Source of the DNA: Zygnema circumcarinatum SAG 698-1b
Lineage: Eukaryota; Plantae; Zygnematophyceae
Length of the DNA stretch: 64,000 bases
Assembly (NCBI GenBank): GCA_037447605.1
Contig: CM074814.1
Location: 992,001 to 1,056,000 of the forward strand
Reading direction: 5' to 3'
Positions 1,173-49,589 of the stretch are shown here, piece after piece. A program made the position numbers and the translations under genes. Under the pieces are notes generated by a model. That model was not told the origin of the DNA. It ran no database searches and worked only from the letters and a program-made list of their open reading frames with translations. Position 1 is the first letter of the stretch. Every line of letters starts with the position of its first letter.

Positions 1173-4036
1173 ATGGCTTCCAAGTCTGATCAGGATCTCC
1201 CCTCGTGGGAGAGCATGTTCCGCGCTCTCAAGAATCCAAAGCTTTCAGCTGAAGGCGAAGGCTCGTTCGATCCTGCTGCTTCTTCTTCGGGTCGTAGCCG
1301 CGTCTCGGCGTCAGTAGCAAGTTCCAACTGGCAGCTGGCAATGTATATCGCTTTGGCGCATGCAGGTGAGAGAATGCAGCACTTTAAGTTTTTTTTTGTG
1401 TTTGGAGTGGAGTGGGTGGTTCGTTTTCTGGGCTCGTCGGAACCATGTTTCCTTCCATTTCATTGATTGGCTCACCTAAGGTAGAACGCATGCATACGGT
1501 TGAAGAGGAGAGGCTGTCTTCCAGTAGCTTCAAAATCTCGCACAAATTCTTATTTGAATGTTGCAATGTAGACTTACAGAAGGAAATCCTCTACATTATT
1601 TCAGTGTAGTGGTTTCATTGAGAGGCCTTGGCTTGCTCTATGATTGTGTGAAAAAAGTTTGCGTGGGTAGCCCCGTAGAGAAGTTTGAATTTGTGGGAAA
1701 TGCATGCATGTATGTTAAAGTCAAGGGTGTGTCCTAGACTTGTCCAAAATATACGTCTGAAAATGCAGAAGCATACCAAGTTGAATCCATGGCGCTCTCC
1801 TCTTCTGTGATCTGCAGACCCTCCTTACAAGTGAAACTTTCTGCCAACAGGTCTTCTCTGCACTGGCGCCATGCTTGTGGGCCTCTTTATCCTCCTCAAG
1901 GACTTCTGGGAGACAATCTTTTGGGCTATCCTCTGCTCCATCCCTCTGCGCAAAGTCCAGGACTCCCTGGTCACCTTCTGGGAGCCCCCTCTGAAGGCCG
2001 GCCTTGTGTCCACGCTGCTCTCTCCTCTCCGCGCAGTGCTCGATGCTGTCGCGGGCACCTTGTACGATATAAGGGTGCTGCTGCTGAGCTTGGTGGGGAT
2101 GAAGTTTGTGCGCCGGAGCCAGTCGGGCTTCGGCCGCTTGTCTCAATGGCTGATCACCTTTGCCGTCCTCAACGTGGCAAGAAGCACCCTAGGTCTTGCT
2201 GAGTCCCTCCTTGCTGCACCTCTCTTTACTGCGCTGTACCGGCAGCTGAGAGGTGAGCCGTCTGCGTCAGTGCCACCTTTGGACTCGGACATTCAGAAGC
2301 GTGCGGAGGGCGGTGGGAGGGAGACTCCCACCTTGGGAAAGAGCAAGAAGGAGGGCAAGGGAATCATTGGCCTTCTGTTTGCGCCATACCGAGCACTGGA
2401 GCATCGAATTTGCAGTTCTCTACTCGGCAGTCTGAGGACGGTGCTGGCACTCTCCATCATTCTAGGCCTTGTTTTTGGCTCTCTAGTGACCGTTCTATTT
2501 TTCATTTACCAGATGGCCATGGAGGGCAAGCATGCCGTGGTGGAACTGGATCATCACATGCGATCAAGGTATAACCCATCATTGCTTCCCTTCCTCATGG
2601 CCGAAACCAAACCAATATTCGACTTGCTTTGCATTCGTATCGACATGTGTTAGCTCTTGGATTTCAATTCACATTCTAAATGTCTGTGTATGTGGGTCAG
2701 CAACTACTTGGAGCGAATCGGGGTCAACGAATGGCTTCGGCAGAATAATGTTTCCGGGATGATCGACACCTATTCAGCGACAGCTTTGCAAACCATTTCC
2801 GAGCAGATTGATGTCTATGCAGCCAAGTATGAGATGGTAGACACTGGTGAAGCGGCGAAATCATACTTGAAGAGTCTAAGCCGTGTGGGAAAGCATGGCA
2901 ACTCCAGCGCGCATGGCCAGGAGTTCGCCTCCCTCATGCAAACGCCCCACTTCAGTCCCTTGTATGCGGTTGCAATGAAAGTAAAGGACAAAGCCTTAAA
3001 GTACGACTTCAATGGTGCGTTGTTAGAGCTTCAAGAAGGCGCTTTTGCAACTCTCGATACGTACAACATCAGCCGAGAAGGTGCAAAACTGCAGTTTTCA
3101 GCACTTTGCAATGCTACGGCAAAGTATGCGCAGGCTGCCTTCACTAGTGGTTCAAGCCTCATGTCGCAGACTGCTTCTTTCTCCGGATCAGTCCTCCTTA
3201 CAATATCAAATCGAGCGAAAGAGACGATCAAGTTCTTAACGTCGGCTGCCCTATTTGTATCTCTTCTCTACTATTTGATAACGTCAGAGGCTGGCGGGGT
3301 CATGCAACAGCTTCTAGACCTTCTTCCATTTTCAGAGAGAGTGAAGCATAGATGCGAGACAGTGATCAGCGGTGCAATAAGCGGTGTACTACTCGGCGTT
3401 GTGGAGATAGCCGTGTTTGAATCCTTCTTCACATTCTTATTGCTGTGGTTCTATGACATACATTTCCTGTACCTCTCAACGACTATCGCCTTTCTCAGTG
3501 CTACGTTCCCTGTTCTGCCGCCATGGCTGTCCCTAATTCCTGGTGCTGCTGAGCTGGCTATTGAGGGCAAGTATGTTCAAGCTTTGTCCATGGTACTGGT
3601 GCATCAAATCAGCCTGTCCTATTCAACGGAGGAGATAATGAAGGAGATTCCAGGACACAACCCGTACCTTATAGGCCTTGGTATTGCTGGAGGCACCGCC
3701 CTTTTTAACTCCGTCACAATGGTACGGATCCTCTGCCTTGAACAGATCGGATGATGAAATAGAAGCGATCTGCATCCCAGGGACATCTGATGGTTTAAGA
3801 AATTATTCTTTTTGACAACTTAGTCTGCCTGCCCCACCTCTTGTTCTGTTTCTTTCCCTACTTCGATTGATACTTGCTCATATGCGTGTCTGAATCTTGG
3901 AACCTTCATTAGCGGTGTTTGACTCCTGCTCACTTGTCTCTTTCAGGGCGCTATTTTTGGTCCATTGGTGGTAACAGTCCTAATTGCACTCCGAAATCTT
4001 TATGCGGAATTCCTGTCGTCTATTGTTGTGGATTAG
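1173..4036 (+). CDS. TMEM245 / AI-2E-like multi-pass membrane protein (At5g55960-like)
   Basis: Four exons (1173-1365, 1851-2568, 2701-3721, 3947-4036) join in frame at GT-AG sites. Motifs: PSWESMFR, QLAMYIALAHAG, WAILCSIPLR, SNYLERIG, GHNPYLIGL, GAIFGPL...LRNLYAEF; many hydrophobic segments. Confidence 0.85.
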
Positions 4037-21529: not shown

Positions 21530-22429
21530 AGCGGCGCATGGAGACAGACGGCACACGGGCCGTTGTGTATTACAATCTTCTTTTTTGATCGCTGCCATGT
21601 GCTCTGACCTAATACTGCTCCTCCTTGTTTTGACTCGTCCCTTTGGGGATCTGTAATTACTCCGATTACTGTAACTCTTGTCAAGTTGGGGTTGTGCAAA
21701 TGGTTTGCCTTCGGAAGCAGAGAGAGAGGATGTATGATGAAAGGAGAGCGAATGGGGCGGAGGGGCACTCCATGTTCACTGCCATACCGTTGATGCTCTG
21801 AACTCTCGCTCTGTCACATGGAACAACCCCCCAGAACTGAAGCTGCATACATGTATGCATGTATGAATGTATGCATGCATGTATGCTTGCATGAAGTACT
21901 CTTTCTGGTCTCAAACTTACGAACAACTTTTTAAGTCCGCCTCCCCCCAGTGGACTCGTGCTCGTCGCTGTCAAAATTTTGGACGTCCAAAGAGAGAGTG
22001 GAAGGTGGCATTGATCTCACGATGGCGAGGCCATGAAAGTGACAAAATCGACAACATGGGGAACCACGAGGAACAACTGGTCGAAAAGGACCTATGGACA
22101 AACTAAAGAACCCTCAAAACTTTGTGGGAGCGGGCGGGCGGCGGCGCTCTAACGTCCACAAACGGCGCTACCCGAGAACCACGAGCAAAGAGAGGGCTAC
22201 GGTACCGCACGTGCGGGGAGGCGGAAGTAGCCGTTGAAATAACGACGAGCACCTCTGTACGGCGTGACAGCACACGTACTTCACTCCGTACGGATGGCAA
22301 CCGGCGGCAGTTCGGACCTCAACAGAATTCTGTTGGCGAGAGCGGGAAGGAACGCGACAAAAACGTTTTGACTCACTTGTCGGATAGGGGGCGTCTTCAC
22401 CAATGGGAGCTTACCAGGTGTGGGCTTGG

Positions 22430-23070
22430 GGACACGTGGCATATGTGCATGCACGTCCGGCGGCTCTGTGGCAGATTCGATGAATCCGTACGGAAAGTCA
22501 CGAGAAGTCGCCCTTATCCACTTGCCACGTTGCACAAGATGCCAGATACCAGATCTCGTATGTACGAATTTAAATGTACGAAAATCTGCCGCCCGATATC
22601 TCGCGAGCGGGCGAGATCTTTTGTGAAGCGTCGGTCCAAATCCAGCCTGTACCCTATTGGGCAGGCCCAAACATTTTCAACCGCTGGCCCTTCCGCATGA
22701 CGGCTCCCTATTGGCTGTCTTGACGCGGCGGCCATCCAGGGCAGGCCTAAAATCCGTCTCCTCCCCCCCTTCCCTCTGGCCGAGCCCCCCGCCCTGCCGC
22801 CCGGGCCCGGCTAGCCGCCAAACCCACCGACCCCCCCGCCCCCCGTTACCGCCATAACCTGCCGTTTAATTTTCCCCTTCGCATGCTGCCAGGACGTTCG
22901 TACAACCTTCTATTTGTCCGACGTGGCGCCACGTGTTGGCACGCGGCGCCGCGCAAGCCGGCCACGCCAATGGAAGGCCTCGGCGGGCGGGGGCAGGAGA
23001 AAGCAACAGAGCCGCCCGGGCCCGGGGGGCGCCGAGGCCTCCCATTGGGCCCCGCCCTTATCGCACGTGC
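22430..23070 (+). promoter_or_regulatory. G-box / I-box / CCAAT-rich promoter upstream of the secreted orphan gene
   Basis: GACACGTGGC (about 22431), CTTATCCA (about 22513), ACGTGGCGCCACGTG (22921-22935), GCCAAT (about 22966), CCTTATCGCACGTG (about 23055), followed by a CT-rich 5' leader. Confidence 0.45.
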
Positions 23071-23359
23071 CAAAACCGCCGCCTCTCGCTAGGCGCACCC
23101 CTCTCCCGCGCCGCGCCCTCCTCCCTCACGGCAGCTCTCTCCCCCCTCCCTCCCGCCGCGGCAGCCCCTCTGCTCTCTCCGAATATTAGGGTTGCGGGCT
23201 GGGGCCTCACTCTGTCCCTCTCTCTCTCTCTCCCACTTTCTCTCCCTCTATTCCCTTTCTGTACTACCTCCAGCGCGCAGTTTCACTGGTCCCGCTCCTC
23301 TCGCTCGTTCTCTCCCTCTATCCTCTTATCCTGGGCTCCCTTTCGCTATCTCTCACGCG

Positions 23360-24013
23360 ATGGGGGCACCAAGTATCGCTGTTGCTTCGCTCTCCTTTGC
23401 TGCAACAGCGATGCTCGTGCTTTCAACCATGGCGGTACGCTCAGCAGGTCCTGCAGTGTCATCATTCGGAACGTTTGAAAGCTTCCAGGAGCGTCTCAGC
23501 CCATTGATATTGAGAGCCTCAGCAATGAAACTCTTCTCTCAAAATGCGGAGCGCGAACGCGCCCCTCTGTCTGCAGGCGCCACCGCGAGCAGGATCAGAA
23601 AGCTTGCAAGGAAACTTGGAAGCTTCCAGAAGTTGGAGGAGGAGGCGCTGCAGAGTTTAGGGTTTGTGGAGGCGTCCTTGGGAGGGGCCAGCGGGGCTAC
23701 ACAGAGGCGCCGTCTCAGATCCGTAGAGACGCCGCTTCCTACGGAAACTGAAACTGTGTTGGCTGGGGAGGCAGGCTCCATTAATCCTTTTGGCCGTGGG
23801 GAGGAGGGGTTCCAAGAAGAGCATGTGACCTTTGGTGAGGAGGACGGGTTCATGGGGTATGAGAGCTTGGACTGGTCGCACCTGGTGAAGAAAATTACGG
23901 ACAGAATGGGGGGAGAGGGGGAGGCGTGGGAGAGCGTGAAGGAGGGAGAGGTAGCGCAGGCACGGCGGAAGGCGGTAGCGACAGGTTGGAGGTGGCTGAG
24001 GGGGGGCTCATAG
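23360..24013 (+). CDS. Intronless hypothetical protein with signal-peptide-like N-terminus, 217 aa
   Basis: Uninterrupted ORF after a CT-rich leader and before a GA-rich trailer. Hydrophobic N-terminus MGAPSIAVASLSFAATAMLVLSTMAVRSA. No recognised family. Confidence 0.6.
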   Translation: MGAPSIAVASLSFAATAMLVLSTMAVRSAGPAVSSFGTFESFQERLSPLILRASAMKLFSQNAERERAPLSAGATASRIRKLARKLGSFQKLEEEALQSLGFVEASLGGASGATQRRRLRSVETPLPTETETVLAGEAGSINPFGRGEEGFQEEHVTFGEEDGFMGYESLDWSHLVKKITDRMGGEGEAWESVKEGEVAQARRKAVATGWRWLRGGS

Positions 24014-31595: not shown

Positions 31596-32731
31596 GCGCC
31601 TGCTCTCAGGTGCTACAGTATGTTTCGGGTTTCAAACTGCTTGATTGGAAATTAGCTATTTAAAACAAGCTTCTTTTGTATTGCGGCTTTCGCTCTCCTC
31701 TCTTCCCTTCTCTTCACTTCATTTCCTTTCTCTCCTCTCCTCCCTCTCCCTCTCCCTTCTCATTTCCTATAAAGACTGGCTTGAAAACTCATCTACACTC
31801 ACACCCGCATTTCACAAAACAATCCACTGCGTATCGTGTCCCTCCCTCCACATTCTCCCACTCCTCCCCTGCCTCCCACACCTCTACCCCCATATCCCAT
31901 CGCGCCAGTTCCCCTCCATAGAGCGCGCACGACTCGCAACCGCAACCGCTCGTCCCTCCAAAATAGCGCACCGTTGTCCTCCCGCCGTATGGCTGTGTCG
32001 TATGTGCGCGGTCCGCGCCAGTCAGCGGGCGCCAGCTGTCCGAGCACGTACCGCCTTCGCTGACCGCCCGCGCCCTTGTGCTTACCGAACAGCTGAACTC
32101 CCCTCCCTCCTCTCATGTCTCCCTCTCTCTTTCTCGCGTCATCTCTTCCCTTCTCTCCATTTCCCTTTCCTACTCTCTCTCCCTCTCTCTTCCTCGTCTG
32201 TGGTTGTCACAGTCAGTGTCGTAATCTTCTGCTGCCGTGGGCTTGGATTTTGACAATGGAACTGTTGATACAATTTCGATTCAAGTGAGGTTCTTCTCAG
32301 CCGTCCATTCAGCCGTTCACCATGGAGAATCCCTTCCACTGGCCGAACTCTTCTTGAAACACGTCTCATGTTAATAGGTCTGTATGTGTTCATTTGTCAG
32401 GACAAACCCTTAACCGCAAGCCCCAGTCATTTTGCCAATCATGTTCTTCACCTGTTCGTACCGTCTTCTGGATGAGGTGTGGTCGACATTGGGAAGAAAA
32501 AACTCAATTAAGTAAACTCAAAGAAGCGGTTGGGAACAAACGAAAGGATCGTGAGGATACGCCAAACCACGGCATCCAGAAATCCATTCAACCTTACATG
32601 AACTTTGCACCACAAAAAAAAGTGAAAGCCATTATTCCTTCGCTTCCACACCCCCATGTTTAACTCCGTCACTCCGTCACTGATGAAAAAGGCAGACAGT
32701 CAGCTTCTTAATAAGATTCGTGGTCGAGTTG

Positions 32732-35700
32732 TTAGTCCTCGTCAGATGCTTCGTCGGGTTCAGACGAGTGCAGAAGGCGTGTCCAGACAGCGGCTGCAAT
32801 CCTCTTCCCCGCTCCAGCCTCGCCCAATCGCGCGCGTCCATTCTGCGCCACCTCATCAAGGAGAGCCCTATCGGAGAGCACACGTGGAACCGCTACAGCC
32901 AGTGCTGCCGGGTCGGGGCAAAGAACCACCTGCAGGAGAGGGAGAGGAGAGGAGAGGAGAGGGAGGGAGAGGAGAGGGAGAGGAGAGGGAGAGGAGAGGG
33001 CGAGGGATTCAGAGCCTTCAGACTTGGCAAAGGTTCACACATTTTACATTCGAGATCAGTACACAGTCTTCTCGCAGAATACCGTAAGTAGATAACGAAA
33101 TTAAAACGACAGCTTTCTTGAATGTGACATTGGTGACGTAAAACGTTTTCAATGACTACTCCATGCTTGGCATTTTGAAGTTAGGTTAAATTTCAATATG
33201 TCTATCGAGCTGAACGCCTGCTCACCGATTTGCCAAGAAGTCGCGACTGCGCCTCAGCAAAGGCCCACGTGAACTGGGGTCCGCTACCAGGAAGAGTGAA
33301 GGCAGGCTTCCCTAATCCAACCTGTAGTAACAAACATGTCAAACATGTCAAAGGTCTGCGTATGAGAGAGAGAGGGAGAGCAGGACTGAATAGGGAGAGA
33401 AAGGGAAACATATCAGAGCTCCAGTTTCCAGTTACTCATGCATGTTATCGTGGAGCATCCCTCTGTCGGACGCGAACCTGAAGCAGGAAATACTACTTTT
33501 AAAACATCCACAATGTCTCCGCTCAATGGTCAATATTTGGGTATTGATTTAGAAGGGGGGAAATGGCTTACCAACTGCTCCGTGCCCGTTCCAGCCATAG
33601 CAATCCCGCCTTCTGCTCTCTGAACGCAGTCGCTGAAATTCCCCTTCACCAGCACAAGCACTGAAGCAGCAGAAGAGGGCACTCTCTCTCCTTGGCAATC
33701 TACTAACTGATACGCCAACATAGAGATAGCATCTCTTGCTTCAGGCCAACAGTCCTGGTCCTGAGTATTGTTATCGGGCTTGGTTCGTGCATCTCCGAGA
33801 CCTTCTTTAGTGAGTCCAACAGGGCTATCTGAGAGAGGATCATGCACAGTTTTTGAATTATGCAGGGTATTGTCTGAAAGAAGATGCCAACCCTTGTCTG
33901 TTAAAGCCGTTCTGAAGGGCCCTAAAGGAAGGCTGGGTGCCAAGGGAACAAGAAATATGCAGCGCTTTGGAGCAAGGGCTTTCACGGTGTCCGTCACACA
34001 CTCCAAAAGACGTTTCCAGTTTGTGAAGGCCTGCCATGGAATGGCAACAGCCGAGGATGAGTATCAAAGTTTCGGTCATTTTTCTTCTAATAAGTCAGTA
34101 AGCACAATGTTACATGAGATCAGCTGCTCTCGAACCACACTACTAGCTTCTAAAAACAGTAAAATAGCTGTGATTGTTGCCCAAAATCGAATTTTTGAAT
34201 CGTCAATGACTTCCCAGTCTACCGTTTGAACCTAAGAAAGCAACGGCTTATGTACACACCTCGGGCTGCCTTGTTCCGGGCAGGACTGTTAGACAGTGGC
34301 CTCCTTCCATGTGGTGTTCCAAAAAAGCATCGAGCAGCCCATTGGGCTCAAGCCCATCCATCATGGGATTGCCCAAGTCGAGCACCTGTAATTGAGCCCG
34401 TTCATTATTCATCTGAGGGGCTCCTACCGACCATACACTACAGTCTAGACGTAATGTACCAACTTCCCCTTTTTGCAGTCCACTTCGTGCTACAGACATG
34501 CAATATTATGATTCGTGAATCGTGAATCGTGAATCTTAAGTTAAATGAATAGTTAACGTGTCCCCAATGGAAGGAATACGGGATAGCACACATTCTGAGA
34601 GCAGTACCTCTCTGCAAACAAACGTCAACGATTTTCATAACGATGCACTCCCCTTGGTGTAAAATTACTTCACATAAAACTACTCGTGATATGCTAAAAG
34701 ATGAGATGGAACAGATTCTCAATGAAGCATGCAATTATAGCACCGTGAAAGCTGTCACCTTGGAGCGAGCTTCGGTTGGAAGCTCATGCTGCAGCATCTG
34801 CACCGTGAGTTTGTCTCTCGGCACAACTAGCCTGAAATGCATGCATCAAAAGGCACGATAGCTGAAGGGGTAAGCTCATCAAGACACCAAATCAGCTAGA
34901 CACTTTATGAATGAAGGAAAGGGAGGATCCATCTCTTGGTCGATTTATTGAGGTTGCATATCTCTGGACCGTCTGCATAACCTGCATGCATGTGTAATGT
35001 TTTCACGCCGATGGTAAATATTAGACAGAATATGAACCAAAAGACAAACGACAAGAGGAGGAAACCAACTCACAGGAATCACCTGCAACTTTCGCTCGCC
35101 ATTAGTGCCCTCTCCCAGGGAAGGTACACACAGTTGGGTGATATCCAGTCCTCCACTGCCCGTGCGCCATCCACAATGCATCATCATGGAATTGGAGCCC
35201 ATCACGGAAAAAGGATAAAACATGATGTCTGCCGAGTCATATAACCTTCTTCAGTGTGTTTGGTTCTCATCATGAGACGAAGAAAGACGTGTACTCACCG
35301 ACACTTCTCGTTTTGGTGTTCAAAATCTTCCCCAACTCATCCCGCAAGTAATATTCACTTTTTGCGGTTCCAACAAAGCCGAATGCAGCCATTTTCTTCC
35401 CTTTTCCACCCCGCTGCTTTTCCGCTAACCACGCCATGGCCAGTGGAAAGACATCTCCAACAGCCAGAACTGCCCCTTGTGGAGATTGCTTCACCCAATG
35501 AGCGATGGCATTCCACTACAATAACAGAAAAAGGAGAGAAGGAAGAGACGTTAGTGAGATGCAAGGAAGTGCTTGCCCTAGTGCAAAACCAAACACTTGC
35601 AATCTTCGCACCTTAAGAAAGGAGTGAATAATGGAGCCAGCTTTTCTTCGATATATCAAATGTATGAGGGCTGACGGGAACTGTGCAATCCATACCCTTT

Positions 35701-36879
35701 AATCAATGCCACAATTCATGCCCTCATTTCATTACAACAAACAATCCAATCATTACCAGTTTTCAGGAAATCTAGGAATTGTGGCCATGCCAGTTTCAAA
35801 CGTCAAGTGCACGATCTTTTGGTTTTGTGAAGCAAAGGTTCTCAGAAGAAAGCTAAGAATATCTGGTAGCTTTCACCTGGTTAACAAGAAGGCCTAACAA
35901 GCCGGCTTTGACATCTTTGACGAGCTGCAATCTGTCCATATAGATGAACCTGCGCACCTAGCAAAATGAGCACTTCAAGTCAACACAAGCAAGCAAGCGA
36001 TTCCTAATTATTCTCGCAAGGTCAAAATAACTATAAAAACAGAGAAAATGCGAGTAGGAAAGGTCTGCATACCCTCCGCTCGGCATTTCCTTGACGTGTC
36101 CAAGTATTGGAATGCCAGCTCTCACATAGGCATTGCCCAGCCCTACCAACGGAAGTCCCTCAATGACAAGCGTTTCCCCTTCCTCTGCAGCCAATACCTG
36201 TCGGCTTATAAGCAACGGAAAAGCATTCAAAATCGGTGAGAAATGCTGAACTATTGAATACAGTAAAGCCAACAGCAGTTCAGTTCCTTGATACAAGCAA
36301 TTCCGCACTGAAATGCTAGACCTTTAAATATAAAAAAACTGACAGGGACACGCCAGGGAGTACCTGAAGCTCTTTCAATATGGCGATCGCTATGGCATCT
36401 TCCCCATGGCCATTGCTCAAACAAAGCAAGCGGTGTTCTCTACAACCAGATTTCCTTTCTGCTCTCTCACTGCCATTGTCACTAGCAGGCGCCCCCATCC
36501 AAGAGGATCCATTCACAGAAACCCTAGGACGTCCTGCAGCCTCCTTCAAACTGGCAAACCGGCTTCCACCTATGAGGGCTCCCGGTGTGAGCCCACACTC
36601 GAACAAAGTCCTACTTCGCTCTTTCCCTCTACCAGCTTCCATCCTTCCTCTTTCTCGGCCAAAAACCGAACCCTTGCAAAGAAATACTGCTCCAAGCTCC
36701 TGGCGGCTGCTCTCTAAGAGCTTCGCAGCAGCCTTCTTCTTACTCCTCGCTCCTACCTCCTTCCCCTTCCCTCCAACCCTTCTCTCTGTAACCATGACCA
36801 AGCTCCCTCCTTCCCTCCCCTTCCATCCAGCCTCCCATCCCCCTCCCCCCAGCCACCTCTCTCCCAGCGCAGTCTCCAT
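32732..36879 (-). CDS. Lipid-A-disaccharide-synthase-related glycosyltransferase (cyanobacterial TIGR03492 type), 10 exons, N-terminal extension
   Basis: In-phase exons encode LLCLSNGHGEDAIA, LPLVGLGNAY, MPSGG|FIYMD, VLAVGDVFPL, FGFVGTAKSEYYLRDE, VYLPWER, VPRDKLT, LGNPMMDGLEP, VLPGTRQPE|AFTNW, IAMAGTGTEQL|VGLGKPAFTLPGSGPQFTWAFAEAQSRLLG and NGRARLGEAGAGKRIA. The order matches the cyanobacterial family as I recall it. Start codon tentative. Confidence 0.88.
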
Positions 36880-37793
36880 CAGAGCATCCTTTTACCTCCC
36901 ACTCTGCCCCCTCCTCCCACTTTCCCCCCACAACACCCCCCCCCTCACTCTCCTCTCTCTCCCTCTCCTCCTCACCCCTCCCACCTTCCCCCCCTATCTT
37001 TCCTCTCTCTCTCTCCCCCCTATCCCCCCTCCCGGGCTCCCCTCCAGGCGGCACGTGGCACTTCACAGGATGCTGACACTGCACGCGACTCCACGCCACA
37101 TCAGAAAGCTTCCAAGTCTCCCCCGTCTCGTGGCATTCCCACCCAATAGAAACATGCCACGTGACACGACATCTGAACCCGAATTGACACGCAAGCATCC
37201 TCTCCTGACGTGGTACGTTTCCGTCCCTCCGATCCCTCTAATCCGACGGTCCTAAATCAGGATCACGAAATCTTCAAAATATATTTATTCGTACAGTGAT
37301 GTACGGACAGGGATCCCCTCCGCGCCACCCCTTCGGCTGCCCTTCCAGAAACAGATCCGCCCGGCGTTCCGTGCCGTACGGACTGTCCGTACGGTCGGCC
37401 CACGCGGTTGTCTCTCTGCGCGCCGAGCGGACCTCGAACCGCCGCCGCCGGCGGTCAGAGCGACCCAAGGGCCCCCCCCCGCTCTCTCTCCCTCTCTCTC
37501 TCGCTCCTCTCTCGCTCTCTCTCTCTGACCTCTCTCTCTCTCTGTACTATCCCTCTCTCGCTTTATCGATTCAAAAGGTTCGAGAACATTCTTCAAAGTA
37601 GAATTTTGAATAGAAGTTTATTTGGGGCATCATCACATCGTAGGGATCAAGCTAAAGCTCGGAGCTAGTGGGAGCTAGCGGGAGCAAGTGAGAGCATTTG
37701 CAGTCCATGAGGGCGAGGTAACGCAGTTTAAGCGTAAAGCTGGCAGCCAAGGTGGCTCCGATTGGGTTAGATGGCTCGGTGGGCTCTCATGGG

Positions 37794-40700
37794 ATGGAGG
37801 ATCGGCAGCTCGCACAGCTTGCGAGTATGCAGATGTGGGGGACTTCGTCTCAACCTTCCTTTGACAGATGCGCAACTCTAAGAGGGAGCCAAGAAATGGG
37901 TCGGGGAGGTTTGAATGGTATGCAAAGTTTTCGAATGCAGGATTTGGTAAACGCTGGGTCAGGCTTCCATTTGGAGCCGCATGAGAGGATACCGAGTTTG
38001 CAGGAAGCGGTCGAGGGGCTGAGGGAGGCTCTCGCTTTAGCGCCCGAGAGAAGGGAGGTGGACCCCGCGCAGGGAGTGGCGAAGGGGACATGGCTTCCAG
38101 AGGAGGACAAAATATTAGTGGCGTATGTGGCGCATCATGGGCCTAAGAATTGGAACAGTCTGCAGGCGAAGGGCCTCTTGAAGAGGAATGGGAAGAGCTG
38201 CAGGCTGAGATGGGTGAATCAGCTCAAGCCCGGTCTCATGGTGAGCTCCCCGTTTTTACAAGAGGCGCAAGGAATGTGAATTCGGCATCGTGCGAAATTT
38301 GGTCACTTGTTTGGACTTGCAGCATCGCTTATAACTAGTGGATTAGTGTCTGCAGCTTCATTGCCATGTTTTGTGAGCATGTGATGACCAATTTTCTCTG
38401 TTTTTCAGTTTGATAAGTTTCAGTGTCGCCATAATGAACAATGTAGTAGTCCCAGAAGTAGTCTCAATTGTTGTTTGGCACGTGGATTTCGCAGCGAAAC
38501 ATGCATGGGAAAGGATGCAAGCGATTCACCGAATCAGAGGAGCGGCTAGTGATCCAGTTGCAGGTAAGCTGCACGCATTGTTCAAATCTCACTTTCAATT
38601 AGAGTTGCTATTCATCGACAACTCTGTATGCCGTTTGTCACTGTCAAAGATTAAAAAACAGCAGCAAGATCTCGTGCCCAGCAAAGGGCAGTTCCCCTTC
38701 CCACATCATGCTCACAAGCTCTCTCTACGGTGTACAGAAAACGATGGGCAACCGATGGGCGCAAATTTCCAAGTTCCTCCCTGGTCGCACCGACAACGAC
38801 GTGAAGAACTTTTGGAACCTTCACATAAAGCGCTTGGAGCGGGTGAAGGGCAGCCATCAGTCCAAGGAGGCGGCCGCCTCCAGTAAGGAGAGGCGGCAAC
38901 CTCAGGAGACTATCCAGAGGGAAAGCTTCGACCAGAAGCCAAAAAACTTAGCACTCGACAGGGAGGGTCAGAGTCACAAGTCTGCTGACGCAGCATCAGC
39001 AGGTGCAGATGTGCTCCATGGTCTTGCTTTCTTCCTATGCTCGGGCGCGAATTGAGTGAAAACATTGCTTTGTTTAGAGTAGATTTGCGATCATCGCATT
39101 TGGCTGAAGATGCGATACGTGTATTGGCGTCTGCAGATGGAGGGGGTTCTAGCCAGCCTGGGAATGAGTCGTCTTCCCTGCAGCCCTCATCAAAGGAGAG
39201 CAGTGAAAGTCAGAAGATCGATGCAGACGGGAAGCAGCTGCCTTTGCAGGAGAGGAGAAGGGTGAGGAACTTAAAGCTGGGCCAAGACTCAGCGGGCATT
39301 GCTCAAGCGCTGGCCTGCAACGCAAGCTCGCTCACTGGTCTCTCAATAGGTGAGCAACAGAATGCCCCTCTCGTAGATAAGGCTACATGCATTCTCTATC
39401 ATCACAGACACGAATATGTGCTCTCCCGAGAGGTGAATCCGAGTGTGGAAACTGTGTTCCATGGGCGAATGTATAGACTGTTTAGTTTACAATTGAAATA
39501 TTCAAATCATCGGGTTATCAGCTCTCCTACATCTCGTCACACGGCATTATTGTTGGCAAGGAAGCCATGAGGCAGAAGTGAGCCGAAGTGGCTCTCCCTA
39601 AACTCATCTCATTATGAAGGCCTGCCGCTACTGAATAGTTACATGAGTTTATTGCCTTTTCCCGAACCGATGTGACACAAACTAACGTGTTCACCATGTT
39701 GCCTCGGCAGACTGTCCGACTTCTTCTGAGCCACCTGACGGCAAAGACGGCCATGAAATAGAAAAGTGGCTGAGGACGCCGCGGTCGCCATGGTTTGCAC
39801 GAGCTTCACCAACCGTCAAATCATCTCCAATGAACATCTCCCCTCACCCCCTCCGTAGTAGCCCCAAAGGCAACTCACTATGGGAATTCCTCAGCCCAAA
39901 GCGCTTATCTCCCCGAATTCTGTTCGGTAGTTTCAAACCTCCCTCTCAAACCAGCTCACCGGGTCGCCTTGCATCCGGCACTAGTCATTCTCCATCTGCC
40001 AGCAGTTCTAACCTTGATGCAGTCCAACCTAAGAATGCAAAGAACGAAGTCTCCGGCATGGAAGGCTATGGGTCCTCCTTCAGTGATATGGCATCAGGTT
40101 CATCGGGCTCTTCTCAGCTCTCTAAAGGGGGCGGAGTTTCCCGAGATACTGCAACTGTAGCTTTACCACCCACCTTCCAAATGTTTCCTGAGGGGCAATC
40201 TCAGAAGGGTTGTTTAAAGAGTGCTTCATGGAGCGGTGTTCGAGTGAAGAGAGAGCCGACAGTGGATAATGAGAGCAGCAATCCTCAGAATCTGACATTG
40301 AACAAAAGCTCAGTGCCACCAAAGAGCCCCCTGAAAGATTCGGGACAGGGTCAAGCAGTTCGGCCAATCACAATGCTAGGCAGCAAACTAAGAAACTCGA
40401 GTTCTTTCGGTCGGAGGGGGCCGGATGCAGGAATAACACCATTGCAGGTTCCATATCCGAGAGAGCTAAAGAGGAACAGCACATTTCCTAGAAGTGCTGT
40501 CCAGGTGCAGGAGGAGACGAAAGTGGAGGAGATGATGATTGCCAGTCCATGGCGGCAGATGGCAGAGGACGATGAGCTGCTGGCAGAGCTTCCCACTCCC
40601 AAGCCGGACTGGGATACCTTATCGTTGTTGGATCCCATAGTGAATCTTGAGCAGGAAAGTCGCCTGCTCTCTATTTATGAAGCAAATGCAGCTCCAAGCA

Positions 40701-41644
40701 CAAGCATTTCGGCAGACAGCAACGAAATCCGGCCGGGAGTTTCGCGATCGGAGATTAAAGGAGGTGACCTTGGAGGGGTCCCATCGGGTAGCCAGTTGAG
40801 TAGTGTAGAGCAAGGAAATGGATGCAGAACAGAGGAGGATAAGATCAGCCGGAAAGGTGGGGAACAAAACAACGTTGGGGGGGTAGCCGCAAGCAAAAAC
40901 TCGCTCGACCTGGTTTCCGCCAGCCTTCAGAGAATTGCTTCTTCATCATCACAGGGAAGCAATCTTGGTATAGATGGCGTGAGTATGCGTGCAGGAACAG
41001 GTTTTTCAGGATATAGCAAGGAAGGAAACGGCACTAGTATCCAAGATCTGGAAGAGGCCATGGGTAAGGAAGATCATTTGGCAGCCATGCAGACTAGCTG
41101 GCAAGTCAAAGAACTTCTACAGTGCCTCTTAAACTCGGGGAACAGAAGTCAGCTTTTGGCAACTGTGCAGTCGAACGACCACCCTCAGATGACAGCCTTC
41201 AATTCAGCAACCCTGCAACAGAATCTGCAAAACTCAAATTCCGTAACTGAACAACAGCCCTCCAATCAGCTGCAGTTACCGCAACCTTCACGAGTGACCC
41301 AGGGAGGGGCTCCTTCTCACCCCCAGAATGGCATGCAAAACCAAATGTCAGTTCCTCACATAGCTTTAGGAGGAAGCCTTCAAGCAAACAGTCACAGTCA
41401 GGAGTATAGAAGAGATGCCCTGCAGCAGCAGCAGCAGCAGCAGCAGCAGGCTGTACAAAGGCAGTGGAGAGAGCAGCAGGGTGAGAAGAAGCATGCTGCC
41501 CTTCAGCGGGTCCAACAAAGGCAGTTCCCTCCCGCCCCGAGTCTGTTTTCGGGCGTAGTGGGCTTCCCCACACTGCCTCTCCCCCGCCCGCGACCGCTGC
41601 CGCCGCTCGAGTATCACTGGGGGGGTGGGAGGAAGTCGTTTTAG
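37794..41644 (+). CDS. R2R3-MYB transcription factor, DUO1-like (subgroup 18), about 975 aa with a long low-complexity C-terminus
   Basis: Exons 37794-38240, 38495-38563, 38738-39002, 39137-39349 and 39711-41644 sum in frame. R2: [12 protein letters not shown]...[32 protein letters not shown]3: EEERLV-type helix ([12 protein letters not shown]), [24 protein letters not shown]. Poly-Q from (CAG)9 at 41423-41449. Confidence 0.85.
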
Positions 41645-47200: not shown

Positions 47201-49589
47201 CACTGGCAGAGCGCGTGAATGCGGCCCTTGCATCCCACACTATGGAGGCTCTGCAGGAAGCTCAACCAGAGGCAGAACTGGCAGCATCCTTGCGGAAAGC
47301 TGCACACTCAGCCTTAGTAACTGCTGGAAAGTAAGTAGTAAAGAGTACTTTTATTGGACTCCTTAGAAAGTCTTTCCTAAATACCCCAAAAGCTCCTTTC
47401 CTTCTCCCTTCTCTAACTCTATTCCTTTCGTCATCTTTTTGGAGGGCAGGTGGACCCGGGCAGCGGATGGTGCTGAGAGAAGGCGGGCAGCACGGAAGGA
47501 AGCAGGAGCCCTCTTTAAGGACGCAAGAAGACTTGAAAGAGCGGCTGCAACGGCTGTTCTTCAGAATACAAAGGTCCTCTGCGGCACTCTCACTGGTTTT
47601 GCTTCAGCATTACAAGACTCAGCCGTCTCCGGTACACCTGCAATGGAAAACCTTCACCACTTCTTCCACTGTGCAGTGGTGGATGAAGCAAGTCAAGCTC
47701 CCACCCCGGCCCTACTCCTGCTTCTACCATACCTTCTCTCCGCTTCTTCTGAAGAAGGTGCTTCTGCAGTAGGAGAGTCCCCTGTGTTAGTCCTTGCAGG
47801 CGACCATAGGCAGTTGCCTCCCACAGTGCTCGCTGAGGATAGACGAGGGTTTGGGGGAGGTTTAGGGGCGACTCTACTAGAGGAGCTCTTAGAGAGGGAC
47901 GGGGGTGGGCTGGGCTTAGGAGGAGGGTTTATGGGGCTCGATGCAGCTGCGAGAGAGGAGATCAGTGGGGCCATCTTGACTAAGGCAGCTGCTGCTGCAG
48001 CATCATCGTTTCACGTAAGAGGGCCGCACTCAGATCGCAGTATAGAAGAAGGTACAGAAGATGTAGATTGTAGTGGAGAATACAGTGGAGAATACAAAGG
48101 ACCTAGCCTTGGGAGTGGTCGTTATTCCACAGCGTTACGTGTGCAATATCGCATGCCGCCTCCGTTAATGGCGTTTCCTTCCGCAGCGTTCTATGGAGGG
48201 GAGCTCTTTGCCGACCGGTCGACTTGGGAAAGGTTCAGTGACTCCAAAGCTTTTGGGAGTGGGGTCTCTGTCAGGGAGGGAGGGGCCCTCCTGCTGCGGG
48301 AGAGCTGCCTGTTGGAGGTGGTAGACACGGCGGGAGGGGGGCTGGAGGAGGAGACGGGCTTAGGGGGAGGGGGCCGCTCAAGCCGTGCTGCCCTTGCAGC
48401 GGAATCTTTCTCCACTTTCAACTTGGGGCAGGTGAGAGTGGGCCGAACTTCTCTCCTCATATGTGAAGCCTCTTTGTAAGATTTGTAAATCGTGGCCTCT
48501 CAAGCAAACTGAGCACTGACGCTGAGTCGACTTTTTGTCATTGATGGAGGTATTTCATCATTTTTTTGGTAGGGATTGTTACTTCTTGTCTCCGTTTTCT
48601 TTTTCTATCGGGGCATTCGGGCGAGCTCACTCAATAGAACCCTTTCAAGATGTGTTGCAGGCCCAACTATCAGTGAGACTGGTGAGAGAACTCTGCCGGA
48701 TGGATGTGGATGTTTCAGACATAGGAGTAGTGACTCCGTACTCAGCGCAGGTGACGCTCCTTAGGGAGCTTCTTTCAGTGGAAGTGGCTGCAGGCTTGGA
48801 GGTGAACTCCATTGATGGCTTCCAGGTATGACCCGTTAATGAGTACGTGGGTTATGGAGAGACATAGCTGCACATAGGAGGAGAGCTACGCTGCTGTTCG
48901 TGTGATATGTAAGATGAGAATCGTATGTGCAATAATACCTCACTAATTACTCAAATCATTCTGCAAGTACATTCATAGTACACTGTGCTGGGTTTAGAAA
49001 GGCACTACAGCACCTCATGCAGCGCAACATCCCTCGTTGTTATTGGGTTTTAACACACTAAAGCTGTGTCAAGCTCATCGAAAGCTAATCCTCACGTTGC
49101 TCATGTATCCTCTGCAGGGCCGTGAGAAGGCTGTTATTTTGTTGGACTGTGTTCGTAGCAACACCGATGGTTCCGTTGGGTTCCTTTCAGACTACAGAAG
49201 GCTGAATGTTGCTCTCACTCGTGCCCGGAATCGGCTCATTATCGTGGGAGACTCTTCCACCCTTGGGTCGTAAGCTCTCAGGTCCCCAAACTGAAGCAAG
49301 GGAAAGAACTTTCAGTGCTCCCTTTTCATGCAGTTGCAGAACCGTAGACATTTGAAGCAAGGCCCAGAATACGTCGAATGTGAAGAAAGTAAGCCTAGCG
49401 GTATTCGGTCATCAATTAGAGATGCCCAACTTACGAAGGCGTTTGTTGGCACTCGTTTGTAGGGACCCTCTGTGGGCGACATTCTTCGATTGGGCGATGT
49501 CGTACACTAATCCCCCTGAAGCAGAGGGCGGCGAGGGAGGGCCTGCATATCGATCTGTCTTTGAATTGCCTCCGGAAGGAGGATGGTGA
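44206..49589 (+). CDS. Upf1-like SF1 helicase (IGHMBP2/SMUBP-2/Hcs1 type) with N-terminal extension and R3H domain
   Basis: R3H-like [25 protein letters not shown]; Q motif LNAEQQAAV; Walker A GPFGTGKT; [10 protein letters not shown]; DEASQA; [10 protein letters not shown]; QYRM; [11 protein letters not shown]; IDGFQ|GREK; [11 protein letters not shown]. Confidence 0.9.

Follow-up and report, generated by a model that had tools for sequence, protein, structure and literature searches.

A conserved, intron-rich nuclear gene of Zygnema circumcarinatum encodes a member of the cyanobacterial TIGR03492 family and a predicted GT-B sugar transferase

We describe a gene in a 64,000-nt stretch of the genome of the streptophyte alga Zygnema circumcarinatum SAG 698-1b (contig CM074814.1, positions 992,001 to 1,056,000; this whole stretch is called the window below, and all coordinates refer to it). 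The gene lies on the minus strand and runs from 36879 (the A of the ATG) to 32732 (the last base of the TAA), and judged by its sequence the encoded protein belongs to TIGR03492/COG4370, the 'lipid-A-disaccharide synthase-related' family. We favor, with some reservation, the view that it is a functional nuclear streptophyte gene of cyanobacterial descent whose product is a predicted plastid-targeted sugar transferase of the glycosyltransferase B (GT-B) fold.

Results

Gene model and conserved intron positions

The three minus-strand frames of 32400-37200 were translated to locate the motifs of the family. All eleven are present and follow one another along descending coordinates, from SNGHGED (36417-36397) through to AFAEAQSRLLG (33264-33232), with MPSGGFIYMD divided by the junction of exons 2 and 3 into MPSG and GFIYMD. 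For each junction, GT/GC-AG pairs were enumerated and the joined peptides scored against a hidden Markov model (HMM) of 79 full-length cyanobacterial open reading frames (ORFs), which had been retrieved with exon 4 as query. The resulting gene model has ten exons and nine introns, all of them GT-AG and 123-373 nt each, with a coding sequence of 1956 nt and a product of 651 amino acids (aa) that starts at the first in-frame ATG downstream of an upstream stop. The ten ORF pieces match the cyanobacterial HMM collinearly from HMM positions 2 to 421, and the spliced protein scores 456 bits (E 1e-140), covering positions 2-290 and 303-421. The remaining ORF pieces across the 64 kb give no significant match to this HMM, so the match lies far beyond chance.

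Support for the individual splice junctions comes from a transcript and from two deposited orthologues. An exhaustive HMMER search with exon 8 found a 645-aa protein, P0001, on a 2.5-kb transcript-like contig of run SRR8128907, which is the closest relative of the window protein (66% identity over residues 145-640). All nine junctions align to it without a gap, and 7-16 of the 16 residues flanking each junction are identical. The deposited Marchantia and Klebsormidium proteins were mapped onto their own genomic loci for comparison of introns: the nine window introns correspond in alignment column and phase to the nine introns of Marchantia Mp6g13300, and each of the six Klebsormidium introns coincides with one of the nine. 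These shared introns imply that the gene has been nuclear since before the divergence of Klebsormidium and land plants. On the evidence of the sequences, we regard the gene model as correct and the gene as old and nuclear. The original prediction, made from the letters of the window, had joined ten exons in phase with the listed motifs in order, and this was reproduced exactly, coordinates included; its description of an intact, intron-rich nuclear gene holds as well, with an open frame, nine GT-AG introns and intron positions common to Marchantia. Two kinds of alternative junction gave similar HMM scores and were rejected: an intron 1 acceptor at 36182, since the P0001 transcript keeps VLAAEKGE and so places the acceptor at 36197, and several GC donors, which were ruled out by the P0001 transcript together with the Marchantia intron positions.

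A pseudogene, a chance chain of ORFs or bacterial contamination could in principle mimic part of this picture, and we give such an explanation hardly any credence. The reading frame has no interruption, every splice site is of the canonical type, and in a 30-sequence alignment of plants and cyanobacteria the window protein retains 50 of 50 invariant and 59 of 61 near-invariant columns. The intron positions shared with Marchantia and Klebsormidium, and the eukaryotic genes on both sides (a Myb-domain gene, a TMEM245-like gene and a helicase), also speak against it, and taken together we consider this reading refuted.

Going along the minus strand, exon 1 (36364..36879, 172 codons) holds the N-terminal extension and the start of the domain (LLCLSNGHGED...ILKELQ); it ends in the donor CAG / GTACTC, at a junction that is gap-free against the P0001 transcript. 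It is followed by exon 2 (36073..36197), which encodes VLAAEEGE...MPSG, by exon 3 (35877..35949; GFIYMD...LLVNQ) and by exon 4 (35299..35515; WNAIAHW...AVGD...FVGTAKSEYY...KTRSV). The short exons 5 (35083..35155) and 6 (34759..34831) encode VEDWISPNCVYLPWERALMASESC and RLVVPRDKLTVQMLQHELPTEARSK, respectively. The stretch that resembles LpxB, VLDLGNPMMD...LPGTRQPE, is found in exon 7 (34260..34385). In exon 8 (33572..34030, 153 codons), a variable loop or insert that contains a WP motif, at about residues 458-519, precedes AMAGTGTEQL. Exon 9 (33226..33321) encodes VGLGKP...GPQF...AFAEAQSRLLGKS, and exon 10 (32732..32929) encodes VVLCPDP...ASDED and ends in the TAA stop at 32734-32732. Two repeats were noted within introns, namely 3.9 copies of TGAATCG at 34509-34535 in intron 6, and a (GGAGAG)n-type microsatellite at 32934-33005, at the 3' end of the last intron and directly ahead of exon 10.

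The protein belongs to TIGR03492 and not to LpxB

The family search of the window protein was done on separate exon pieces, with full-length homologues used as proxies. Seven pieces match TIGR03492 alone in NCBIfam, at 20.3, 34.9, 39.7, 23.5, 46.7, 57.0 (exon 9) and 27.0 bits, and in exon order they cover profile positions 1-21 (residues 152-172, in exon 1), 26-59 (exon 2), 85-133 (exon 4), 184-218 (exon 7), 277-312, 312-344 (exon 9) and 347-393 (exon 10) of 396. As a rough sum the seven scores come to about 249 bits, the whole-protein cutoff being 219.2 bits. The TIGR03492 scores of full-length homologues from streptophytes lie at 380-410 bits, and the 456 bits of the window protein on the cyanobacterial HMM equal or exceed what these homologues reach on that HMM. 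The signature motifs SNGHGED, PSGGF, AVGD, GTAKSE, PWER, PRD, GNPMMD, LPG[ST]R, AGTxTEQ, GLGKP, GPQF and AEAQxRLLG are all present. The likeness to the cyanobacterial family, which is held as a hypothetical equivalog, is thus a full-length collinear match with all family-invariant residues; the window gene differs from its cyanobacterial counterparts in being nuclear, with nine spliceosomal introns, and in an N-terminal extension of 70-150 aa.

No Pfam family was matched by any exon piece at E ≤ 1, and the full-length streptophyte homologues gave no Pfam match either. The two models of canonical lipid-A-disaccharide synthase (LpxB, family GT19) behaved alike: TIGR00215 was matched neither by the exon pieces (E ≤ 1) nor by the full-length homologues (E ≤ 0.01), and PF02684 was matched neither by the window pieces nor by the plant proteins. 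A cyanobacterial member reaches PF02684 at 21.9 bits, below the cutoff of 22.6. The choice of TIGR03492 over PF02684 and TIGR00215, which the original prediction had made, is therefore borne out by the HMM searches, in which only TIGR03492 was matched.

UniRef automatically names plant orthologues 'Lipid-A-disaccharide synthase', and taken literally this would make the window protein a canonical LpxB. LpxB has a GT-B fold, and a weak local similarity to it does exist. By hhalign, about 80 columns can be aligned with E. coli LpxB at E 3e-4, from GHxMxD/GNPMMD to LLPGSRxxEV/LLPGSRaPEv, and a GE.SGD-like N-terminal and an SGTA.LE-like C-terminal motif of LpxB presumably also have counterparts in the family, to which they look similar. 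In a profile search of PDB sequences, LpxB (5W8S) came first, at E 0.15, and nothing was significant. With both LpxB models unmatched by any eukaryotic copy, and with LpxB outside the top 50 structural matches described below, we consider a canonical LpxB very improbable and effectively refuted at the level of the family. We find that 'LpxB-related' is a fair label for a remote, local similarity in sequence, and not for membership in LpxB. Lipid A is not a known product of plastids.

The family had been described in the original prediction as functionally uncharacterised, and we agree: a literature search for TIGR03492, its family name 'lipid-A-disaccharide synthase-related', COG4370, IPR019994, Mp6g13300 or KFL_001520180 gave no paper under these identifiers. 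It had further been suggested that the gene could belong to an undescribed plastid envelope pathway. Orthologues have already been deposited in public databases, though, as MPTK1_6g13300 (which from the locus tag we take to be Mp6g13300), KFL_001520180, GBG93428.1 (Chara braunii), LOC131029577 (Cryptomeria japonica) and KAH9298235.1 (Taxus chinensis), and the copies of Marchantia, Klebsormidium, Chara, mosses and Cryptomeria are annotated as 'hypothetical protein' or, automatically, as 'Lipid-A-disaccharide synthase'. These streptophyte orthologues are of the same family, have the same kind of N-terminal extension, fall into one clade and share introns with the window gene (nine of nine in Marchantia, a subset of six of six in Klebsormidium), but the window protein is only 41-50% identical to those named, and has no entry of its own in the protein collection that was searched.

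Distribution among streptophytes and cyanobacteria

P0001 and a profile of 15 eukaryotic sequences each served as the query of a word search against a collection that includes NCBI, UniRef and EukProt proteins. Each search found more than 3,000 proteins, and the best 120 per search are the matches listed here; copies scoring below about 478 bits fall outside them. The eukaryotic matches rank at the top in both. Among the matches listed, the gene is found in the streptophyte algae Mesostigma, Chlorokybus, Klebsormidium and Chara, in the liverworts Marchantia, Riccia (two species) and Calypogeia, in the mosses Ceratodon and Sphagnum (two species), and in the conifer Cryptomeria japonica; a fragment from a second conifer, Taxus chinensis, came from the HMMER search. 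Several transcripts are also among the top-ranked matches, and those that group with Cryptomeria may include ferns or lycophytes. Angiosperms, lycophytes and ferns gave nothing above the cyanobacterial background among the best 120 matches of each word search, nor did chlorophytes, red algae, glaucophytes or secondary algae, and the exhaustive HMMER search with exon 8 gave nothing from these four algal groups either. From these searches flowering plants appear to lack the gene.

Some further matches (P0002/P0022, P0008, P0004, P0019 and P0015) are exon-sized ORF fragments of the same family whose frames continue into introns. They lie on long metagenome or Logan contigs of up to 124 kb, and some are Chlorokybus-like, with MVSV ahead of GLGKP. 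They look like further unannotated eukaryotic (algal) copies.

When bacterial genomes were scanned, more than 357 stretches were found to encode relatives, and the best 80 of these are cyanobacterial save for one metagenome-assembled genome (MAG) labelled 'Actinomycetota' (L033, JBLNEP010000128.1). As its TIGR03492 gene nests inside Microcoleaceae with a Shimodaira-Hasegawa-like approximate likelihood ratio test (SH-aLRT) support of 99, the contig is probably cyanobacterial sequence mis-binned into an actinobacterial MAG.

A single eukaryotic clade of cyanobacterial affinity

A tree was built with IQ-TREE (LG+C20 PMSF, 46 rows, 507 columns) and is unrooted, with Gloeobacter, Gloeomargarita and the non-cyanobacterial members left out. 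P0017, the only divergent candidate for an outgroup, was dropped for its long branch of 2.1-2.4 substitutions per site. The eukaryotic copies form one clade that is split from all sampled cyanobacteria at 100/100. Within it the land plants are a clade at 100/99, which comprises the liverworts (99/98), the mosses (100/98) and a Cryptomeria-containing group (100/100). The window protein and P0001 pair at 100/100 outside the land plants, and group weakly with Chara and Mesostigma (87/75), a placement that agrees with a streptophyte alga as the source. Unrooted as it is, the tree of these sequences shows a cyanobacterial affinity and a single eukaryotic origin.

The gene had been proposed to be a product of endosymbiotic gene transfer (EGT). 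Its cyanobacterial ancestry is supported, in that the nearest prokaryotic relatives of the eukaryotic copies are cyanobacteria. The unrooted tree does not show nesting; in it a single 100/100 branch separates the eukaryotic from the sampled cyanobacterial copies. With homologues confined to Streptophyta among the matches listed, and with no root to the tree, the data would agree with EGT as well as with a later horizontal gene transfer (HGT). We therefore take seriously, without favoring it, the possibility that gene and enzyme are as we describe but were acquired by HGT from a cyanobacterium into the streptophyte stem. Among the matches listed, eukaryotic homologues occur only in Streptophyta and not in any second primary-plastid lineage, and with such a distribution EGT would need several independent losses. 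On the other hand, no modern subgroup of cyanobacteria contains the eukaryotic clade, which is set apart by a long, fully supported branch, divergent algal copies below about 478 bits would be hidden behind the best 120 matches of each search, and both the absence of a root and the taxa left out of the tree weaken the argument for HGT.

N-terminal extension

Every eukaryotic copy has 46-326 residues ahead of the domain, whereas cyanobacterial members have 2. Counted from the first ATG, the extension of the window protein is 150 aa, of which 19% are Gly, 20% Arg+Lys and 11% Asp+Glu. A purine-rich low-complexity tract (36700..37040, minus strand, 75-90% A+G) takes in the putative 5' untranslated region and the first approximately 60 codons, and as it covers these codons the true start codon is uncertain. 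Met29 and Met80 are alternatives, and with the latter the extension may be as short as about 70 aa. An extension of about 100 aa or more, as was originally predicted, is thus what the first ATG gives but not what a start at Met80 would give. A search for an alternative 5' exon with the P0001 N-terminus (tblastn against 36300-40000) gave no match, and the room for such an exon is less than 900 bp, as the divergent Myb-domain ORF begins at 37752. The tract at 36700-37040 is CT-rich on the plus strand, spans the putative promoter too, and is resolved by Tandem Repeats Finder (TRF) into degenerate repeats of 14-22 nt. In most homologues (Chlorokybus, P0001, Ceratodon, P0030 and Klebsormidium), the first 50 residues are Ser/Thr/Ala-rich and 0-4% acidic, a composition that would be expected of a transit peptide.

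Variable loop in exon 8

The original prediction had pointed to a long insert in exon 8, and this was confirmed: from the conserved W to AMAGT, the variable loop of the window protein spans 96 aa. Bacterial loops have a median length of 46 aa (range 33-189), roughly half of that. Loop length varies widely among other streptophytes as well, as it does in all lineages, and the counterpart of the loop is of low confidence (pLDDT, below) in the Marchantia model. A WP motif (WPE/WPAN) and the hydrophobic strand that follows are conserved within the otherwise variable eukaryotic insert. The motif occurs in 12 of 19 eukaryotic rows versus 1 of 50 bacterial rows, and sets the window loop apart from bacterial members of the family; the insert with the motif was noted in window exon 8 and in P0001, P0010, P0025-P0028, P0030, P0032 and P0034, and the motif is missing from Chlorokybus, Chara and the conifer group.

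Predicted fold

An AlphaFold model of the domain of the Marchantia orthologue was built with the 30-sequence alignment and compared with the PDB by Foldseek. The model has a mean predicted local distance difference test (pLDDT) of 88.9 and a predicted template modelling (pTM) score of 0.89, and consists of two Rossmann-like halves with an interdomain cleft. At E ≤ 0.001 the Foldseek matches number at least 500, and among the best 50 every entry that could be identified is a GT-B transferase or epimerase. Judged from the model, the homologue is a two-domain GT-B enzyme. The window protein contains no transmembrane-like segment (maximum KD19 1.57) and is for this reason predicted to be soluble.

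The top 19 structural matches are almost all UDP-N-acetylglucosamine (UDP-GlcNAc) 2-epimerases, one having an uninformative title, with E-values of 2e-11 to 1e-9 and template modelling (TM) scores of 0.45-0.65. The transferases HepE, YojK, GtfD and PglA come next.

Discussion

How would such a protein act? We propose that the N-terminal extension, present in every eukaryotic copy and without counterpart in cyanobacteria, could direct the protein into the plastid, where it would carry on the task of its cyanobacterial ancestor. If it works like LpxB and other GT-B enzymes, a nucleotide-sugar would sit in the C-terminal domain (AMAGTxTEQ / GLGKP) and an acceptor of lipid or glycan type in the N-terminal domain (SNGHGED, AVGD, GNPMMD, LPG[ST]R), and the sugar would be passed to the acceptor at the stromal face of the envelope. 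Plastid targeting is in this scheme an inference and not a result.

Several observations weigh against this proposal. The best structural matches are UDP-GlcNAc 2-epimerases and not transferases, LpxB is absent among the top 50, the hhalign probability for the LpxB similarity is 39%, and the transferase activity is predicted by analogy. The N-terminus of the window protein is Gly/Arg/Lys/Glu-rich, is encoded in part by low-complexity DNA and is not that of a typical transit peptide. Finally, no conserved operon that would hint at a pathway was found across 80 cyanobacterial loci, the best neighbour being present in 16.

The structural matches could suggest that the protein is a nucleotide-sugar epimerase or hydrolase of GT-B fold, like WecB/MnaA, instead of a glycosyltransferase, and the profile search of PDB sequences also lists such an epimerase over the C-terminal domain, at E ~2. 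We think this unlikely. E-values of true transferases lie within two orders of magnitude of those of the epimerases, no Pfam epimerase family was matched, and at the level of sequence the only similarities are to LpxB. The likeness to the non-hydrolysing UDP-GlcNAc 2-epimerases (WecB/MnaA; 3BEO, 9CM8, 1F6D) consists in the architecture of two Rossmann halves (E 2e-11, TM at most 0.65); with about 11% identity and a root mean square deviation of 7-9 angstroms, it is one of superfamily only.

The composition of the window N-terminus could likewise mean that the protein acts outside the plastid, in mitochondria or cytosol. In Arabidopsis, a mitochondrial location is reported for the canonical Lpx enzymes. 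Such a location appears doubtful to us, given the Ser/Thr/Ala-rich and acid-poor N-termini of the homologues, the cyanobacterial ancestry of the gene and the doubtful start codon of the window copy.

What it might make is a matter of speculation, an envelope glycolipid or a peptidoglycan-associated glycan having been suggested in the original prediction. In cyanobacteria the genes downstream of the TIGR03492 gene vary between genomes, and the commonest neighbours encode a 2-phosphosulfolactate phosphatase (16 of 80 loci, mostly Microcoleus) and a hybrid histidine kinase (13 of 80). In 8 of 80 loci, from Nostocales, Coleofasciculaceae and Symplocastrum, a gene similar to Omp85/BamA-Toc75, with POTRA domains, is a divergent neighbour (at about 100-2570 on the minus strand of L002, L008, L025, L038, L046, L051, L058 and L080). 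This adjacency is a weak hint of a connection to the outer envelope.

A link to plastid peptidoglycan can be examined through the distribution of the Mur genes. Full Mur sets are reported for Klebsormidium, Marchantia and Cryptomeria, and Taxus has all Mur genes but one (PMC12681378). No angiosperm has been reported with a full set including a class A penicillin-binding protein (PBP) (PMC12681378), although this absence is disputed (PMC10784329), and how plants make plastid peptidoglycan, and what it is composed of, is still only partly understood (PMC10784329, PMC12681378). The named holders of the TIGR03492 gene (Klebsormidium, Marchantia, Cryptomeria and Taxus, with mosses and Chara by lineage) thus belong to lineages reported to have a full or near-full Mur set, which agrees with the suggested link as a correlation. 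The correlation runs in one direction only: of the organisms with Mur genes, Selaginella, Physcomitrium, Micromonas and glaucophytes are missing from the matches listed. Moreover, other cyanobacterial traits, for example the dark-operative protochlorophyllide oxidoreductase (DPOR) and flavodiiron proteins, are similarly lost in angiosperms. It could be that TIGR03492 is an unrecognised enzyme of the cyanobacterial and plastid envelope, acting for example on a peptidoglycan- or lipid-linked glycan, that streptophytes whose plastids bear peptidoglycan retained it, and that angiosperms lost it along with the full Mur/PBP set, but we regard this more specific proposal as improbable.

The genes around the locus are eukaryotic in character where they could be identified. 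A Myb DNA-binding ORF (PF00249, E 1.5e-12) at 37752-38276 on the plus strand is divergent from the gene, less than 900 bp from its ATG, and large ORFs without a Pfam match follow it on the same strand to about 43093. One of these, of 604 aa (39830-41641), gave no record in an exact database look-up. Farther away are an ORF similar to AI-2E transporters and TMEM245 at 2657-3751 (plus strand; best matches of 35-38% identity to angiosperm TMEM245-like proteins and transcripts, so that the collection lacks a close relative of the source genome) and an exon-sized ORF with AAA_11/AAA_12 domains, of a UPF1/SEN1-type helicase, at 47439-48476 (plus strand). A local GC peak of 0.60 at 22001-24000, the window average being about 0.49, holds overlapping ORFs on both strands without a Pfam match. 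A search of the 64-kb window against Rfam gave no match.

In conclusion, this window adds one further orthologue, with its annotation validated, and not a new kind of system. The family to which it belongs is found in at least 357 bacterial genomes scanned, nearly all of them cyanobacterial among the 80 examined, and in more than 3,000 protein clusters, with no function assigned. Clear orthologues are carried by Marchantia (Mp6g13300) and by transformable cyanobacteria, which makes the family tractable. A nuclear copy has persisted under strong constraint in streptophyte algae, bryophytes and conifers over hundreds of millions of years, and we suggest that this long retention, with invariant residues and introns kept, and the apparent absence from flowering plants make the gene a candidate for an overlooked, predicted plastid function.

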